From positions 1 through 64,000 of the IMG/VR virus record IMGVR_UViG_3300002143_000235: a stretch of DNA of 64,000 bases, one strand, 5' to 3'. The notes under the pieces are model-generated. The model made no database searches and had not been told where the DNA came from. It was given only the letters and a program-made list of their open reading frames with translations. This document shows, piece by piece, positions 1 through 52,981 of the stretch. How positions within the stretch are numbered: position 1 is the first letter of the stretch; each line of letters begins with the position of its first letter. The translations under genes were made by a program, and so were the position numbers.

Positions 1-992
1 TAAATATCTGAAATGGTTGCTTCTATGATCTCCAAACGACTTGTTACTGAGTTATAATTGATAGTTGCATTTTTAATTGTATCACAGCCTTTAATCACAT
101 CAAATAGTTTACTTTTAAACTTATCCCACATATTTTTTACTGTTGTATAGTCGTCAACTAAATCTACAACAATTTTCATTCCATCTATGTTTGCTAAAAA
201 TTCATCATATGTTTTATAACGTTTTAACCAATTAATATTATCATCAAGATAAGAAGAAAGTCTAAGCATATCTTCTTGAGTAAGTTCGTCTGTAATAGCT
301 GATCGTGTTTGTAAAATAAAATAATCCATGAGTGCAAGAATATCTTCACTCTTGTTATGATAGTCTGCTCCACCAATATAACGAAACTCAAGGTAATTCT
401 TCCATTTTTTTTGAAAATTTACACCGTAATATTTTGTATCATCAGGTAGTGAAAACCCACCCATAATAGAATTTATTGCACCATCCGTATCAGTAAAACC
501 TTCAAAAGGTACAATCCATTTAATTGATCTTGCATAAATATTATTACGACGTGATGGAAATTTCGAATAAATGAAATCTTCATCAAGTGATAATATCATC
601 TTAATAACATTCAAATCTTTGACTTCCATATCTTCTAAAGATATATTGATATGAACAGAACAATGCTCATCTGTATAACCATTTTTCTTAATAAATTCAA
701 GCATTTTAATGATTGTCATTCGTGCATCCATCCATGTCATTGGACCGGTAATTAACTCCACCATTTCAGATCCACCCGAAAAATCTGGTTCAATTTTAAA
801 TGTTTTATCGGTAACCTCAAATGCTGTATGGTAAGCATTAAAACCCCAAACTTCTACAGGTTGTAGAGCAATGTTTAACATCTCAACAGTTTTTACATAG
901 CTGTGATTAGAAAAAAACTCAAACTCTATACCTACCTTGGCTTTCGAAAGTTCTTTCCAAGCATTCATGAAACGACTGTTGAATGTATCCAT
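1..992 (-). CDS. Amidoligase (COOH-NH2 ligase, Amidoligase_2-like), 3' end runs off the window
   Basis: Hand translation from ATG at 992, open to the window edge: MDTFNSRF..KVGIEFEFF..KIEPDFSGGSEMVELITGP..CSVHINIS..KYYGVNF..LEFRYIGG; CATATATAC promoter motif at 997-1005. Missing from the ORF track because it is partial. Confidence 0.75.
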   Translation of the reverse strand, partial: MDTFNSRFMNAWKELSKAKVGIEFEFFSNHSYVKTVEMLNIALQPVEVWGFNAYHTAFEVTDKTFKIEPDFSGGSEMVELITGPMTWMDARMTIIKMLEFIKKNGYTDEHCSVHINISLEDMEVKDLNVIKMILSLDEDFIYSKFPSRRNNIYARSIKWIVPFEGFTDTDGAINSIMGGFSLPDDTKYYGVNFQKKWKNYLEFRYIGGADYHNKSEDILALMDYFILQTRSAITDELTQEDMLRLSSYLDDNINWLKRYKTYDEFLANIDGMKIVVDLVDDYTTVKNMWDKFKSKLFDVIKGCDTIKNATINYNSVTSRLEIIEATISDI

Positions 993-1683: not shown

Positions 1684-2402
1684 TATTTATCTTCTATCTT
1701 ATTTATTATTTCTTCTAGTACTGATGAAACTTCTGCAGTAAGTTCAATAAAATACTCGTCATTACCATCATTTTTATAGTACATCAATTGTTGAATTTCA
1801 AAATCGACACTACCATCATTTTCTGCAGGATTTTCATTTGTTTCTGGTGATGTTTCCCAAAAATTAGCATGATAATTTGATGTAACAACTAATGATACTT
1901 TTAAATCATCATTTATAAACGATGTCTCTTGTGTTGTTGTTTTATCATTTTCAAGATCTTTTACATATGGAATTTCATTTGCATATACATACCAACCGTC
2001 TCCAAATTCAACTACTTCAAATGTTCTATTAGGAACATTTGAATAGTTTGTTGTACGTTTTGTACGTGGCATTTTATACGCTTTAGCAACAACATTAACA
2101 AATGCTTCAATATCTTTTAAATGTTTAAGAGCTTCTAATTGTGCCTGAGTATTATCATCACTAAATTGCTCAAATGTTTTAATAACATATTCACGCTTTT
2201 CAGAAATAAACTTTGGGCTTGTTTTAATAGCTGTGATAATTTCACCCATGTTATCCTGTATAAATGTTGCAGATAATTCAGCAGGTGTATTTACAGGATC
2301 AACAAAATAGTTTTGTAAGATTTCAATTGCCTCTAGTTTATCAATATTCATTCCTGCCATGTAATCTACATAGAGTTGAATATCATTATATCTTCCGTCC
2401 AT
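1683..2402 (-). CDS. hypothetical protein
   Basis: 239 aa ORF, TAATG overlap with next gene, ATATATAA motif upstream (2424-2433). Confidence 0.7.
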   Translation of the reverse strand: MDGRYNDIQLYVDYMAGMNIDKLEAIEILQNYFVDPVNTPAELSATFIQDNMGEIITAIKTSPKFISEKREYVIKTFEQFSDDNTQAQLEALKHLKDIEAFVNVVAKAYKMPRTKRTTNYSNVPNRTFEVVEFGDGWYVYANEIPYVKDLENDKTTTQETSFINDDLKVSLVVTSNYHANFWETSPETNENPAENDGSVDFEIQQLMYYKNDGNDEYFIELTAEVSSVLEEIINKIEDK

Positions 2403-2446
2403 CTAAGGAATTATTTCATTTTTTTATATATATCAAACAGTTGAAA

Positions 2447-3334
2447 TCATATATCGAATTCACCAAAATCCATATCATCAGTATCTTGCTTGAAAGCCCC
2501 CGTTGTATAAGATATAATTTCTGTTTCCTGTATATTATTTGAAATAATAGAAAATTTAGTCCAACCTTTTGTTTTACCATATACTGGACTATTACCTGTA
2601 TTAATTCGTTTATCTAAGGTTGATAGTGAAATATTAAATTCAACACAAAATATTTTAAGATCTGATCCATTTACTTTATAAATAAATCCATTAGGAGCAA
2701 TAAATATATGATCAATAGATCTACTACTTTTTCTACCTTTATTAGCTATACTAATTTTATTACGCATTTCAGATGAAATTATAGCACCATAACGTGGATT
2801 ATTTTTTCCTTTAACTTTAGCTGAAATTTTTTCTTTACTGTTATTAGTGTGTTGATGTCCTTTAAAATAACCACCAACAGAAACTTGATGTGCTGTACGT
2901 AATTCTTTTTGAATTTTAGCTTGTTCAATACCATAAATTTCTTCGTAAGTTTTACCGCTATGATTAGGTGGACGATTATCTAAACAAAAATTACACAAAG
3001 GTCCACGTTTTACTGTTTCACCATCTATTGTACCAATTGCTTGAATACTTATAGTTTCATTGTTATATGCATCAGTTTCATTATTTGTAAAATAAATCTT
3101 TTCAATTATAGGTTCTAATCCTAATGATTGTATTTTTTCAAATTTATGTTTAAGAATTGAATTTAGTTTTTTGTTATTATTTTTAAAATTTTTAAAATGC
3201 TCTAAATAACGTTTATCTTTTCCTTTACCTAAATAAATAGGTTCAAATAAAAAACACAAATTTATGTTTTCATAAGTATATTTTCCAGGTTTTCTAGGAT
3301 CTAAATAAACATAATTATACCACATATCCATCAA
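2447..3334 (-). CDS. GIY-YIG homing endonuclease with NUMOD3-like repeats, fused in frame to an NrdB C-terminal tail
   Basis: YVYLDPRKPGKY..PIYLGKGKDKRYLEH GIY-YIG variant; HTNNSKEKISAKVKGKNNPRYG NUMOD3-like; ends QETEIISYTTGAFKQDTDDMDFGEFDI. Confidence 0.8.
   Translation of the reverse strand: MMDMWYNYVYLDPRKPGKYTYENINLCFLFEPIYLGKGKDKRYLEHFKNFKNNNKKLNSILKHKFEKIQSLGLEPIIEKIYFTNNETDAYNNETISIQAIGTIDGETVKRGPLCNFCLDNRPPNHSGKTYEEIYGIEQAKIQKELRTAHQVSVGGYFKGHQHTNNSKEKISAKVKGKNNPRYGAIISSEMRNKISIANKGRKSSRSIDHIFIAPNGFIYKVNGSDLKIFCVEFNISLSTLDKRINTGNSPVYGKTKGWTKFSIISNNIQETEIISYTTGAFKQDTDDMDFGEFDI
2471..2520 (-). repeat. direct repeat copy 1 of nrdB 3' end (49/50 identical to 3740-3789)
   Basis: catatcatcagtatcttgcttgaaagcccccgttgtataagatataattt; single mismatch at 2498 vs 3767. 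Confidence 0.97.
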
Positions 3335-3713
3335 TATAATTTATTTGTGTATTTTCAATTTTTATATATCGACCATCTGTATGAATTGATGCAAATTCCG
3401 GTAATTTATAACCATAAATAAATAATTTATTAACAAATACACATGGTGTAATATCAATTATTTTATCATTCTGTAATATTACAGAATGTTGGATAGCTAA
3501 TAATTCAGTATTTTCTTCATTTGTTAATAAATAGTATCCTAAAATTTTTTCACTATCGTGATTATCATAAATATATTTATTAACATTATTATGACAATCA
3601 TTCATTATGTAATTTGAAGTTAATGGTATATCTAAAATTAAACAATTTTCTGGTTTCATCTTTATAATAAAAGATGAAACCAAAGGAACAGATATTTCAG
3701 CTATTTTCCACAT
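3315..3713 (-). CDS. papain/transglutaminase-like protein with Cys40-His76-Asp87 triad, candidate protein glutamine deamidase
   Basis: DCHNNV..ILGYYLL..AIQHSVIL..KIIDITP; starts 2 nt after the nrdB stop. Confidence 0.55.
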   Translation of the reverse strand: MWKIAEISVPLVSSFIIKMKPENCLILDIPLTSNYIMNDCHNNVNKYIYDNHDSEKILGYYLLTNEENTELLAIQHSVILQNDKIIDITPCVFVNKLFIYGYKLPEFASIHTDGRYIKIENTQINYIDGYVV

Positions 3714-3715
3714 TT

Positions 3716-4789
3716 TTAAATATTAAAATCGTCAAAAATCATATCATCAGTATCTTGCTTGAAAGCGCCCGTTGTATAAGATATAATTTGAGTTTGTTGT
3801 GGCGCTTCTTGAACAGCATTTCCACCAATCCAGTTACCAATCCATCCAATAGGATTTGCTACTTTTTCAAAAATTGGTTCCATTTTGATAATCTTCATAC
3901 GCTGATTTGTTAAATACTTCATATACTGAATAAGAATTTCAGCATTTAGACCAATCATTGAACCATCTTTAAACAAATATCTTGCCCAATCCATTTCTTC
4001 TTGAGCAGCGTCGCGGTACATTTGTGCTGTAATATCTTTACATTCAGCAACAACCTCATGAAAACCTTCACTAGCATCTTCAGCCATGATTTTCAAAATA
4101 AGTGATGAAAATCCCATATGCAAGTTCTCGTCACGTGCAATAAGTGATATGATCTTTGCATTACCTTCCATCTTCTTATTCTGTGCAAAAGCAAATGAGC
4201 AAGCGAATGAAACGTAAAAACGAATACCTTCAAGAATGTTGATAGATACAAGTGTTAAATATAATTTCTTTTTTTGATTGTGAATTGTATCATCTGGAAT
4301 TGCATTAATCAATTCATCATAATATTTTGTTACCGACATTGCACGATCAAGTATACGTTGATCAGTAAGAACTGTATCAAGTACTTCAGAAGGATTTGTA
4401 TAAATCTGTTTGATGATGTAGGTATAAGAATACGAGTGAAGAGTTTCCATGAATTCCCATGCTTTAGCAAACGCTTCAACTTCTGGATTTGTACAGTTCT
4501 CAAGTAAATGCGAAATTCCACGTGATTGAATTGTATCAAGCAAAATCTGGTATTTAAGGTTGAGTGTGAATACAACTTGTTGAAATTCAGGAAGTGAATT
4601 AAAGTCCATCTTATCCTTACTCAAGTTAATTTCTTCTGGTCTCCACATGTAAGCAAGTTGTTGCTTGAACATGTTGAAGATCTTTTCATATTTTGGATGA
4701 TCGTATCGTTGAACTCCCAAACCATGTGGGCCAAAGAACATCGGCTGTGAACGTGTGTCCTCAGTGCTTGTATTTATTATCGATTTCAT
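3716..4789 (-). CDS. nrdB: class Ia ribonucleotide reductase beta subunit with atypical APQQTQIISY tail
   Basis: WRPEE (W48), YQILLD (D84), ETLHSYSY (E115/H118/Y122), ILEGIRFYVSFA (E204), RDENLH (D237/E238/H241); tail Tyr356 equivalent present. Confidence 0.96.
   Translation of the reverse strand: MKSIINTSTEDTRSQPMFFGPHGLGVQRYDHPKYEKIFNMFKQQLAYMWRPEEINLSKDKMDFNSLPEFQQVVFTLNLKYQILLDTIQSRGISHLLENCTNPEVEAFAKAWEFMETLHSYSYTYIIKQIYTNPSEVLDTVLTDQRILDRAMSVTKYYDELINAIPDDTIHNQKKKLYLTLVSINILEGIRFYVSFACSFAFAQNKKMEGNAKIISLIARDENLHMGFSSLILKIMAEDASEGFHEVVAECKDITAQMYRDAAQEEMDWARYLFKDGSMIGLNAEILIQYMKYLTNQRMKIIKMEPIFEKVANPIGWIGNWIGGNAVQEAPQQTQIISYTTGAFKQDTDDMIFDDFNI
3740..3789 (-). repeat. direct repeat copy 2 of nrdB 3' end (within nrdB)
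   Basis: catatcatcagtatcttgcttgaaagcgcccgttgtataagatataattt. Confidence 0.97.
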
Positions 4790-4818
4790 ATCTTATTTGT
4801 GTTTTGATTATAGACTAG

Positions 4819-4850
4819 AATGCACTGAAAGTCTGACCTTCCAGTGCATT
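4819..4850. terminator. stem-loop between nrdA and nrdB
   Basis: aatgcactg-aaagtctgaccttc-cagtgcatt inverted repeat. Confidence 0.55.
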
Positions 4851-4858
4851 TATTGGTA

Positions 4859-7141
4859 TTAGATAGAGCAAGCACCTCCTGCGCATGTTTCATCTGTACC
4901 CATATCATCAAGATCATCAGATTTTTTATCATCTGTGTTGGCATAGTAGATTGTCTTCAATCCCCATTTGTAGCTGTTGAAAATGTCAGTCATTACCGTC
5001 TTCAATGAGATTCCCTCAGCTGAGTACTCATAGTAGTGGTTTGCACTAATGGATTGATCAATCCATTTCTGAATGAAACCAACAATTTTTGTATAACCAT
5101 CATTAGATCCCATTTCAAATGCTTTTTGATATTTGTTCTTCAATCGAACAGACTCAGGAGCAACTTGTTTTACAACACCTGTCTTAGAACGCTTTGTAGT
5201 GATGAGTGATCTAATTGGTTCAATACCATTTGTAGCATTTTGAACTACTGCTGATGATTCTGCTGGCATAATAGCTGATAATACAGAATTGCGTAAACCT
5301 GCACCGTATTGTAATTCATATCTTAATGCTTCCCAATCACAAGAATATGGTCGTTTACATAATTCATCAAGATTTTTATTATATCGATCAATTGGTAAAA
5401 CACCTTGTGAATATGTTGTTTTATCATACCATTCACAAGCACCGAATTCTTTTGCTAATTTGTTTGATGCTACTAATAATGAATATTGAATTCGTTCAAA
5501 TAATTCATCAACTTTTTCGAGAGCCTCTGGATCAGTATATTTTAAATCTTGTTTAGCAAGCCAATATGCAAAATTAGTAACACCAACTCCTAAACTACGG
5601 CGTTTTAACATTTTTCTTGATGCATTAACTGGATAATCTTGGTGTTCAATTATAAAATCAAGTAATCGTACACAATATTCAGAACATTTATCTAGTTCTT
5701 CCATTGATTTTATATTTCCTAAATTAAGTGCTGCAAGTACACATAAAGCTATTTCACCTTCAGATAAATGTTCAGTTGATGGATCGTGGTCGATGTCATA
5801 AATTGATGTTAATTCTTTTGTTACTAAACATATTTCTACACATAGATTTGACATACGAACACGTTCAATGAATGGTGAATTAGAATTAACATTATCTATA
5901 TTCATGATATAGATTCTTCCAGTTCCAACACGCTCTTGGGCTATTAAATTCATTAATTCACGTGCCTTAATCGTCTTACGTTTTATTTTTTTATCATTTT
6001 CATATTTTACATACAATTCATCGAATTCAGCATTATCACCAAAAGCATCGTATAAACCTGGAACATCTGCTGGTGAAAATAAAGCAACATCTTCATTTTT
6101 TATAAAACGTTGAAAAATTAATTTTGATAATTGAATACCATAATCCATGTGTCGTACACGATTATCATCAGTTCCTTTGTTGTTCTTCAATATAACGACA
6201 TCTTCAATTTCTTGGTGCCACCAAGGAAAATAAATTGTTGCAGATCCTTTACGAATTCCACCTTGTGAACATGAATGTGTAGAGCTCTGAAATTGTTTAA
6301 AAAATGGAACAACTCCAGTATGTATAATTTCACCTCCACGAATCTCACTTCCAACACCACGAATTCTACCGCCATTAAGTCCAATACCAGCACGCTTAGA
6401 AACATATTTAGTAATTGCAGTATTTATGTGACAAATACTATCCAATGAATCACCAGTTTCTAATAATACACATGAACTATACTGTCTATTTGGTGTACGT
6501 ACACCAGCCATGATCGGTGTAGGTAATGATATTTTTTGCTGTGATATGAGATCATATAACTCTTTTACATGTTTTAATCTTACATCATGATCATAATTCA
6601 TAAATACTGTCATCGCTATAAGCATAAAAGCATATTGTGGCGTTTCGTAAATTGTTTTAGTTTTTCTGTGCTGAACCAAATACTTATCCATCAATTGCTG
6701 TAATCCAGCGTGTGTGAAATCATAATCACGTTTGTGTTTCAGATACAAATTCAATACAGAAACTTCTTCTGTTGTGTATTTCTCAAGAATGATTGGATCA
6801 TATACCTCACGTTTAATATTGTTAACAATCACATTCCATAAATGTGGCATATCTGTTTTTACCTCGAATACTTCTTTACGAAGAAGATAGTTTAAAAGAT
6901 TACCAGCCACATATTGATAATTCGGTGTACGCTCAGATATCATATCAACAGCAGATGTAATAAGTACATTGTGTATTTGACTTGTTTTAATTCCTGGAAA
7001 AAATTGAATTTCAGCATTCATAGCCACATCTGATGCTGAAACACCAGCAAGACCTTCTGTTGCCCATAAGAGCACCTTATTAATTTTTTCCGCATCTAAT
7101 GGTGTTTTTTCACCGTTTCGTTTAGTCACTTTTAACTCCAT
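4859..7141 (-). CDS. nrdA: class Ia ribonucleotide reductase alpha subunit with ATP cone
   Basis: VTKRNG ATP cone, PTPIMAGVRT..SSCVL, SNLCVEI, AIMPAESS, GLKTIYY, C-terminal CAGGACSI. Confidence 0.97.
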   Translation of the reverse strand: MELKVTKRNGEKTPLDAEKINKVLLWATEGLAGVSASDVAMNAEIQFFPGIKTSQIHNVLITSAVDMISERTPNYQYVAGNLLNYLLRKEVFEVKTDMPHLWNVIVNNIKREVYDPIILEKYTTEEVSVLNLYLKHKRDYDFTHAGLQQLMDKYLVQHRKTKTIYETPQYAFMLIAMTVFMNYDHDVRLKHVKELYDLISQQKISLPTPIMAGVRTPNRQYSSCVLLETGDSLDSICHINTAITKYVSKRAGIGLNGGRIRGVGSEIRGGEIIHTGVVPFFKQFQSSTHSCSQGGIRKGSATIYFPWWHQEIEDVVILKNNKGTDDNRVRHMDYGIQLSKLIFQRFIKNEDVALFSPADVPGLYDAFGDNAEFDELYVKYENDKKIKRKTIKARELMNLIAQERVGTGRIYIMNIDNVNSNSPFIERVRMSNLCVEICLVTKELTSIYDIDHDPSTEHLSEGEIALCVLAALNLGNIKSMEELDKCSEYCVRLLDFIIEHQDYPVNASRKMLKRRSLGVGVTNFAYWLAKQDLKYTDPEALEKVDELFERIQYSLLVASNKLAKEFGACEWYDKTTYSQGVLPIDRYNKNLDELCKRPYSCDWEALRYELQYGAGLRNSVLSAIMPAESSAVVQNATNGIEPIRSLITTKRSKTGVVKQVAPESVRLKNKYQKAFEMGSNDGYTKIVGFIQKWIDQSISANHYYEYSAEGISLKTVMTDIFNSYKWGLKTIYYANTDDKKSDDLDDMGTDETCAGGACSI

Positions 7142-7420
7142 AGTTGTTATTATGTTTTAATTATTGTAGTCTTATATATGTGTTGAATTCCTCAAAGTTT
7201 GAGTTCACACCTCTGCATTATGTGGTCAAAAAATATTATTAGTATATTTCAATATCGAAAATTAAAAAGTGTGCCACATATGTAATACATGCATACGTAT
7301 TAGACAAATGCTATGGATTTTGATATATAATAAAAACATTTTAAAAAAATATTTTTCAAAAGCATACCACGGATTAAATATTTTACCTATATTCGTATCG
7401 TTCAATTAATAATTAAGATT

Positions 7421-51649: not shown

Positions 51650-51700
51650 GTTTTACTTTTATATATCAAACTTTAATTATCAGTCAATGCCATGATTTTG

Positions 51701-51787
51701 TTATCCAGGTAGGGCTCGAACCTACAGTGGGATTACTCCTCTCTTCCGATTCAAAGTCGGACGTGTTGCCAATTACACCACTGGATA
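51701..51787 (-). tRNA. tRNA-Gln(UUG) with long variable arm
   Basis: TATCCAG/CTGGATA acceptor (U1-A72), TCCGA-CTTTGAA-TCGGA, 19-nt variable region, GTAGG-TTCGAGC-CCTAC. Confidence 0.88.
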
Positions 51788-52897: not shown

Positions 52898-52970
52898 TGG
52901 ATGTAAGGTGATTCGAACACCTATCAACATGACCAATACAGCGGTTATTTTACTATTAAAACTATACACC
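52898..52970 (-). pseudogene. tRNA-like gene with distorted anticodon arm (isotype undetermined)
   Basis: GGGTGTA/TACATCC acceptor, AGGTG-TTCGAAT-CACCT T arm, no canonical 5-bp/7-nt anticodon arm. Confidence 0.6.
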
Positions 52971-52981
52971 CATTTATAATG

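Follow-up and report, generated by a model that had tools for sequence, protein, structure and literature searches.

A small gene beside phage nrdB is a candidate protein-glutamine deamidase for a recoded ribonucleotide reductase tail

Introduction

How can a phage ribonucleotide reductase (RNR) function when its only small-subunit gene encodes glutamine in place of a glutamate that is held to be indispensable? In the Escherichia coli class Ia enzyme the residue E350, in the C-terminal tail of the small subunit (NrdB, or beta), is conserved and essential, contacts K154 of the large subunit (NrdA, or alpha) in the holoenzyme, and when substituted disrupts radical transfer (PMC9248007, PMC11482829). 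The question arises from the stretch analysed here, positions 1 to 64,000 of the IMG/VR virus record IMGVR_UViG_3300002143_000235 (the whole of these 64,000 nucleotides being called the window), where nrdB encodes glutamine at the E350 position and is directly followed by a small open reading frame (ORF) of 132 codons, here named ORF132. Glutamine codons at this position in over a hundred phage genomes should surprise RNR specialists, by whom E350 is regarded as conserved and essential. The complete virus record (313,708 bp) holds one full nrdB and one ORF132, and as E350 is reportedly essential and this nrdB is the sole copy in the genome, the encoded glutamine must in some way be rescued. 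The reading that we favour, with a probability of roughly 0.55, is that ORF132 is a protein-glutamine deamidase that restores glutamate in the NrdB tail.

A recoded NrdB tail and the gene that adjoins it

The genes concerned follow one another on the minus strand in the order nrdA, nrdB, ORF132 and endonuclease, and comprise the following features.

4859-7141, minus strand: nrdA, large subunit of class Ia RNR, 760 amino acids, with ATP-cone, Ribonuc_red_lgN and Ribonuc_red_lgC domains.
3716-4789, minus strand: nrdB, small subunit of class Ia RNR, 357 amino acids (PF00268, 174 bits).
3788-3796, minus strand: recoded tail codons CAA-ACT-CAA of nrdB, encoding Q332-T333-Q334, the proposed substrates, placed by alignment to E. 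coli R2 (1jpr_A).
3315-3713, minus strand: ORF132, a putative protein-glutamine deamidase of 132 amino acids, assigned from its motifs and invariant residues.
2447-3334, minus strand: free-standing GIY-YIG/NUMOD3 homing endonuclease gene, 295 amino acids (PF22945 at 36.3 bits and PF07460 at 31.9 bits, both above the cut-offs).
2447-2531, minus strand: displaced Glu-type copy of the nrdB 3' end (QETEIISY...), the right-hand direct repeat, recognised by repeat comparison.

In all respects but one the window's NrdB has the features of a class Ia small subunit, that is a ferritin-like domain, the diiron ligands, the radical tyrosine and the tail tyrosine, and the equivalents of D84, E115, H118, Y122, E204, E238, H241 and Y356 of E. 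coli R2 are all kept. The exception is the conserved tail glutamate. The tail reads APQQTQIISY, and alignment to 1jpr_A places Q332 at E350, Q334 at E352 and Y338 at Y356 of the E. coli protein; in cyanophage-like relatives there are three glutamines in the tail, in a Q-x-Q-x-Q run. The nrdB stop codon (TAA, 3716-3718) and the ORF132 start codon (ATG, 3711-3713) are separated by a spacer of 2 nt, a distance at which the translation of the two genes could be coupled, and the 3' end of ORF132 is in turn overlapped by the start of the endonuclease gene.

Glutamine codons occur with ORF132

Two sets of loci were compared, 80 viral loci retrieved through the ORF132 family and 80 retrieved through an NrdB profile, and ORF132 was scored as absent from its absence within 1.5-3.5 kb of nrdB. 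At the position equivalent to E350 glutamine is found in 52 of 69 loci with ORF132 (the other 17 having glutamate) and in none of 64 loci without it, all of which encode glutamate. Position 352 follows the same trend, with glutamine in 63 and glutamate in 6 of the 69 ORF132-bearing loci against glutamate in 61 of the 64 others. Glutamate and glutamine are the sole residues seen at either position in the loci that bear the gene. Within the NrdB-profile set, 78 of the 80 loci have no ORF132 and tails of the form APQETE(V/I)ESY, and the two that have it carry APQQTQVQSY tails. The initial annotation of this locus had proposed that the small gene encodes an NrdB-modifying glutamine deamidase, and this distribution supports the proposal, the chemistry being a matter for the discussion below.

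The gene order is equally consistent. A homolog of ORF132 lies downstream of nrdA-nrdB in the 80 IMG/VR loci and in independent contigs from ENA, JGI and Logan, and every ORF132 locus with upstream DNA shows nrdA, nrdB, an optional endonuclease gene and then the homolog; the lineage of the window has the endonuclease gene downstream of ORF132. Two further metagenome loci found by a narrow-alignment scan have the same architecture. The initial annotation had staked its proposal on homologs being found beside genes with Glu-to-Gln changes rather than never beside them, and this is where they lie: the homologs with readable upstream DNA are all located shortly downstream of nrdB.

The association is also narrowly confined to the tail. 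When every column of NrdB was scanned against the presence of ORF132, the three tail columns 332, 334 and 336 came out on top (p = 5e-29, 7e-27 and 2e-22 in order of strength), with the next column at p = 7e-10. A scan of NrdA columns against presence of the cassette to which ORF132 belongs gave a best p of only 4e-7, and this lack of compensation in NrdA fits a mature tail that is of the Glu type again. At the nucleotide level, among 115 closely related cyanophage-like sequences, only three G-to-C changes in the first codon position are prominent (1e-20 to 1e-30), and the synonymous sites between the glutamine codons and the cassette show no association. The latter pattern speaks against hitch-hiking, as a supporting observation only, for site saturation could yield the same pattern; the sharpness of the nucleotide signal likewise supports direct selection without proving it.

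On a tree of the NrdB body, from which the tail was excluded, the presence of ORF132 changes at least 21 times. In eight supported independent pairs the glutamine state follows ORF132 in about seven and opposes it in none (median sign-test p = 0.016). A second data set, drawn from ENA, JGI and Logan and holding the 120 nearest NrdB proteins, agrees: all five Gln-type NrdBs with readable neighbouring DNA have an adjoining ORF132 domain, and within 3.5 kb it is missing from both of the nearest Glu-type relatives.

nrdB carries a homing-endonuclease cassette at its 3' end

ORF132 belongs to a homing-endonuclease cassette of about 1.3 kb at the 3' end of nrdB. The cassette is bounded by an 81-nt direct repeat (2451-2531 and 3720-3800, 85% identical, with a spacing of 1269 nt), and in its final 27 or so residues the endonuclease repeats the NrdB tail in frame; the NrdB profile matches at 2450-2596 within the endonuclease gene. 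The endonuclease has GIY-YIG and NUMOD3 domains, is free-standing, adjoins a conserved gene and is patchily present, all of which suits a homing endonuclease. The Glu-type tail fusion, which carries the NrdA-binding peptide, is also kept in the endonucleases of two other loci (L001 and L006) that are themselves only about 57% identical to that of the window.

Evidence for insertion comes from locus L123, which differs from its closest Glu-type relative by a 1061-bp insertion composed of an endonuclease remnant and an ORF132 homolog and bordered by a repeated stretch of some 35 nt from the nrdB 3' end. In the window, L001 and L011 the displaced copy of the tail is of the Glu type (QETE...) and the working tail of the Gln type, which implies that the recoded tail, ORF132 and the endonuclease arrived together. 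Their later fates diverge. Of 66 loci, 20 have a full-length GIY-YIG endonuclease, 37 a partial one and 9 none, so that it is incomplete or missing in 46 of 66, whereas the key residues C40, H41, H76 and D87 are intact in all 88 contig-derived ORF132 homologs. We also considered, and rejected, that the duplicated tails are spanned by a group I intron or another RNA element: Rfam detects none in 2000-7400, and L003 has no usable second 'exon'.

The ORF132 family and its predicted fold

The initial annotation had described a Cys-His-Asp ORF at 3315-3713, and the ORF is indeed present, on the minus strand, with each of the residues named at its place. The motifs are D39-C40-H41-N42-N43-V44, G59-Y60-Y61, Q75-H76-S77-V78 and I86-D87-I88-T89-P90, and the proposed catalytic codons are those of C40 (3594-3596), H76 (3486-3488) and D87 (3453-3455). 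Across 31 diverse homologs C40, H41, N43, Y61, H76, S77, D87, I88 and T89 are invariant. The description of the ORF as an orphan holds for curated libraries, as none of the families in Pfam, PHROGs and NCBIfam matches it and tblastn with two family members against 50,697 GenBank phages gave zero matches, with no cultured phage carrying the gene identified. It does not hold for viral metagenomes: 107 stretches of IMG/VR viral contigs encode relatives, and protein databases add 10 sequences that are closely related and about 20 that are less so. An embedding search had pointed to YunG-like families (scores 0.85-0.87), a lead that hmmscan did not confirm.

The AlphaFold2 model of ORF132 is of high confidence (predicted local distance difference test, pLDDT, 91; predicted template-modelling score, pTM, 0.83). 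By DSSP assignment C40 is the first residue of a helix (40-50), which is followed by strands at 55-65, at 71-81 (bearing H76) and at 84-86 (with D87 directly after), and then by three more strands. A model of the homolog P0012, in which the equivalent C31 starts a helix at 31-42, has the same order of elements; P0012 is a natural fusion of a homolog to a tail remnant, and in the folded fusion the tail is placed at low confidence. In the papain-like core a cysteine at the N-terminus of a helix precedes an antiparallel sheet, with histidine on the second strand and a polar residue on the third (PMC10318531). The order of elements in the ORF132 model, as given by DSSP, fits this arrangement, in keeping with the papain- or transglutaminase-like Cys-His-Asp core that the initial annotation had recognised from residue spacing; solved structures gave no significant match, and membership of the papain-like fold is no more than plausible.

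What the enzyme may do

Deamidation appears the simplest account of these data, given that glutamine at position 350 is found only with ORF132, that glutamate and glutamine alternate there, that NrdA does not compensate, and that ORF132 is kept despite decay of the endonuclease. From this we infer a substrate, a chemistry and a rationale for both immunity and dependency. ORF132 would be a small cysteine amidohydrolase, probably with a papain-like core, whose triad would comprise the nucleophile C40, the base H76 and, as its third residue, D87. Its targets would be particular glutamines of the flexible tail at the C-terminus of the NrdB that the phage itself encodes, namely Q332 and Q334 in the window and the three glutamines of the Q-x-Q-x-Q run in the cyanophage-like relatives, and by deamidating them it would regenerate the glutamates that cassette-free relatives encode directly, including the equivalent of E350 needed for radical transfer between the subunits.

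With such an enzyme present, glutamate and glutamine codons would be interchangeable, and Glu-to-Gln changes would be neutral and could become fixed. The glutamine codons, which differ by G to C at the first, non-wobble codon position, may moreover shield the site from the accompanying endonuclease. Once they were fixed, the RNR would depend on ORF132, and this dependence would explain why ORF132 is always retained as the endonuclease decays. It is possible, as a tentative extension that we hold with clearly less conviction than deamidation itself, that the whole is a selfish module in which an endonuclease reading the non-wobble bases of glutamate codons, a Gln-type tail that escapes cleavage, and a deamidase together make the host gene permanently dependent.

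Counter-evidence and alternative explanations

A number of observations weigh against a deamidase. Two loci (L086 and L094) lack ORF132 and encode glutamine at 352, with glutamate at 350, so that position 352 is bound less closely to the presence of the enzyme than 350 is; two others (L037 and L071) have ORF132 beside an all-Glu tail, a combination that the deamidase model permits. The tail and ORF132 are physically linked, and part of their association could reflect co-transfer. No known deamidase family (CheD, Gln_deamidase_2, Nt_Gln_amidase, Cif or Gln_amidase) is matched by any of 31 family members at E <= 1 in Pfam, nor in NCBIfam, and ORF132 is accordingly not filed as a member of one; the claim is that it works like one. 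Foldseek searches against the PDB (E <= 0.001) and Swiss-Prot gave no usable match to the ORF132 model, an exhaustive VIA-align search reached a best Z of only 3.4, and among the weak structural matches papain-like entries are interspersed with NTF2-like ones. The residues C40, H41, H76 and D87 could form a metal site, H41 being invariant too, and fusions of the domain to nucleases, described below, could indicate a role directed at DNA. Finally, the E350Q substitution in particular is only said to be inactive in E. coli. The remaining structural and profile searches returned nothing usable: matches in AFDB clusters, the ESM Atlas and BFVD were confined to proteins that are uncharacterised or have a SEC-C motif and, in BFVD, one GIY-YIG fusion, and a profile search of PDB sequences with the ORF132 family found nothing meaningful.

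One alternative is that ORF132 is part of the homing machinery, serving it as a second nuclease or as a domain for DNA binding or specificity, and that the glutamine codons are simply a tolerated, cleavage-resistant allele. Its location within the cassette, between duplicated nrdB 3' ends, suits such a role, as does the fact that the two tail types differ by first-position G-to-C changes at non-wobble sites of the kind that endonucleases read. Moreover, an ORF132-like domain is found at the C-terminal end of larger DUF723/treble-clef-repeat proteins with a PD-(D/E)xK-like nuclease segment (L019:2636-4267, L058:2720-4363, L171:3343-4062, L172:3861-5474 and L176:3992-4987) and is fused in a BFVD protein to GIY-YIG_COG3680, so that the domain has been joined to nucleases of no fewer than two different families. 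But an accessory of the nuclease should decay along with it, which the intact key residues of ORF132 contradict, and a merely tolerated glutamine should outlast loss of the cassette and yet is absent at position 350 from all cassette-free loci. It is also left unexplained how the RNR would function without a glutamate that is invariant elsewhere and reported to be essential. We consider this explanation unlikely. A transglutaminase-type activity, by which the tail glutamines would act as acyl donors for a cross-link to lysine, for instance in NrdA, or for the attachment of an amine, strikes us as slightly less probable still. Cys-His-Asp chemistry also supports transamidation, the contact of E350 with K154 of alpha would offer a lysine, and transglutaminase-like proteins are among the weak structural matches: over residues 29-132 VIA-align lists the transglutaminase-like PeiP and TglA, together with arylamine N-acetyltransferase and staphopain C, at Z 2.5-3.1, and a Transglut_core cluster is matched with a template-modelling (TM) score of 0.42. 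A cross-link would, however, need glutamine, whereas glutamate and glutamine alternate freely at 350 and 352 in gene-bearing phages; two or three glutamate positions have been recoded rather than one, and no column of NrdA covaries with the cassette.

The four invariant potential ligands, with C40 and H41 adjacent, and the conserved position directly downstream of nrdB, which is said to be that of the accessory gene yfaE in E. coli, would also suit a small metal-binding RNR accessory with a role like that of YfaE or NrdI, for which the Gln-rich tail would serve as a docking site. This we judge quite improbable, as it explains neither how the RNR would function without its essential glutamate nor why the recoded positions are restricted to glutamate and glutamine, and profile scans found no similarity of ORF132 to ferredoxin or flavodoxin families. 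Least credible of all, to the point of being very improbable, is a cysteine protease that cuts the beta tail of the phage's own RNR or that of its host or a competitor. The papain-like order of elements, the staphopain C match and a weak Peptidase_C47 match (E = 0.016, in one family member) are what speak for it, but a cut near 332-334 would cost the genome's single NrdB both Y338 and the end that binds NrdA, and a protease gives no reason for a specific recoding of glutamate to glutamine.

Genomic surroundings and occurrence

The nrdA of the window is uninterrupted. Several close relatives have it as two separate genes with intein-splicing halves, a 'fractured gene' arrangement in which a GIY-YIG gene or an unnamed ORF lies between the halves (L001:1362-4883, L003:6523-10079 and L170:1-2954). 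In the closest Glu-type relative (L173:1-4571; NrdB 83% identical) the anaerobic RNR genes nrdD and nrdG are inserted between nrdA and nrdB.

An ORF of more than 330 amino acids that runs off the start of the window (3-992, minus strand) matches Pfam Amidoligase_2 with 29.7 bits against a cut-off of 22. It is a curiosity of the locus that a predicted amide-forming enzyme is encoded 1.5 kb from a putative amide-hydrolysing one. The cassette-free locus L173 has a 445-amino-acid gene at the syntenic position, the Pfam scan having covered the window's ORF only, and judging by this synteny the amidoligase-like ORF does not seem to be specific to the cassette. Elsewhere in the window there is an unusually long tRNA-Gln(UUG) of 87-88 nt (51700-51787, minus strand), and a fifth tRNA (52898-52971, minus strand) that was detected by Rfam and is absent from the ARAGORN output.

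Public sequencing runs that share sequence words with positions 2300-4900 of the window come from freshwater, that is from drinking water, lake and river metagenomes. The window itself is in no public sequencing run, the runs found holding freshwater relatives only, with 5-7% of words shared. The relative L001 comes from activated sludge. The phage group appears to be a freshwater and uncultured one.

Implications and comparison with known systems

ORF132 is a previously unnamed phage protein that is carried by more than 100 uncultured phage contigs. If it does convert glutamine to glutamate in NrdB, this would be a new maturation step for a central enzyme of DNA synthesis, in what would be the first ribonucleotide reductase known to depend on Gln-to-Glu conversion after translation, and ORF132 would represent a protein-glutamine deamidase family that is new and has very small members. 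The selfish module suggested above would amount to a protein-level analogue of RNA editing that acts as an addiction mechanism. For the biology of mobile elements it may be a new route by which an element recodes an essential gene and becomes indispensable.

The closest precedents for the proposed logic are CheD/CheB, which act on chemoreceptors, and Dop, which acts on Pup. In these systems the gene encodes glutamine, the mature protein needs glutamate, and a dedicated enzyme, often encoded nearby, carries out the conversion, as is proposed for ORF132 and NrdB. The ORF132 family is, however, unrelated to these enzymes, with no Pfam match to CheD or any deamidase; its substrate would be an essential RNR residue, and its gene is carried by a phage homing-endonuclease cassette. 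There is a further parallel in the small proteins encoded with class I RNR genes that are needed for an active beta subunit, the ferredoxin YfaE and the flavodoxin NrdI, both of which act on the metal cofactor. Like theirs, the gene for ORF132 lies directly beside RNR subunit genes and its product would be needed for an active beta, but it has neither a ferredoxin or flavodoxin fold nor cofactor motifs.

In its predicted structure and proposed chemistry ORF132 resembles the papain-like deamidases and amidases (protein-glutaminase PF18626, NTAQ1, Cif and OspI), which combine a triad of cysteine, histidine and an aspartate or other polar residue, with the cysteine at the N-terminus of a helix and the histidine and aspartate on consecutive strands, with hydrolysis of glutamine side-chain amides (PMC10318531). 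It differs from them in having no detectable sequence match or significant structural match to any of them, in its much smaller size (132 amino acids), in the extra invariant histidine beside the cysteine, and in its proposed target, which is an enzyme of the phage itself and not a host protein.

The cassette, for its part, recalls the free-standing endonuclease genes of T4-like RNR loci, such as mobE of T4, which lies between nrdA and nrdB (PMC2790892). In both cases a free-standing gene adjoins nrdB and is presumably mobilised by cutting of the conserved neighbour with co-conversion of the flanks (PMC2790892). The cassette of the window goes beyond these in that it adds an enzyme gene that is always conserved, duplicates the 3' end of nrdB, and is tied to the non-synonymous recoding of essential codons.

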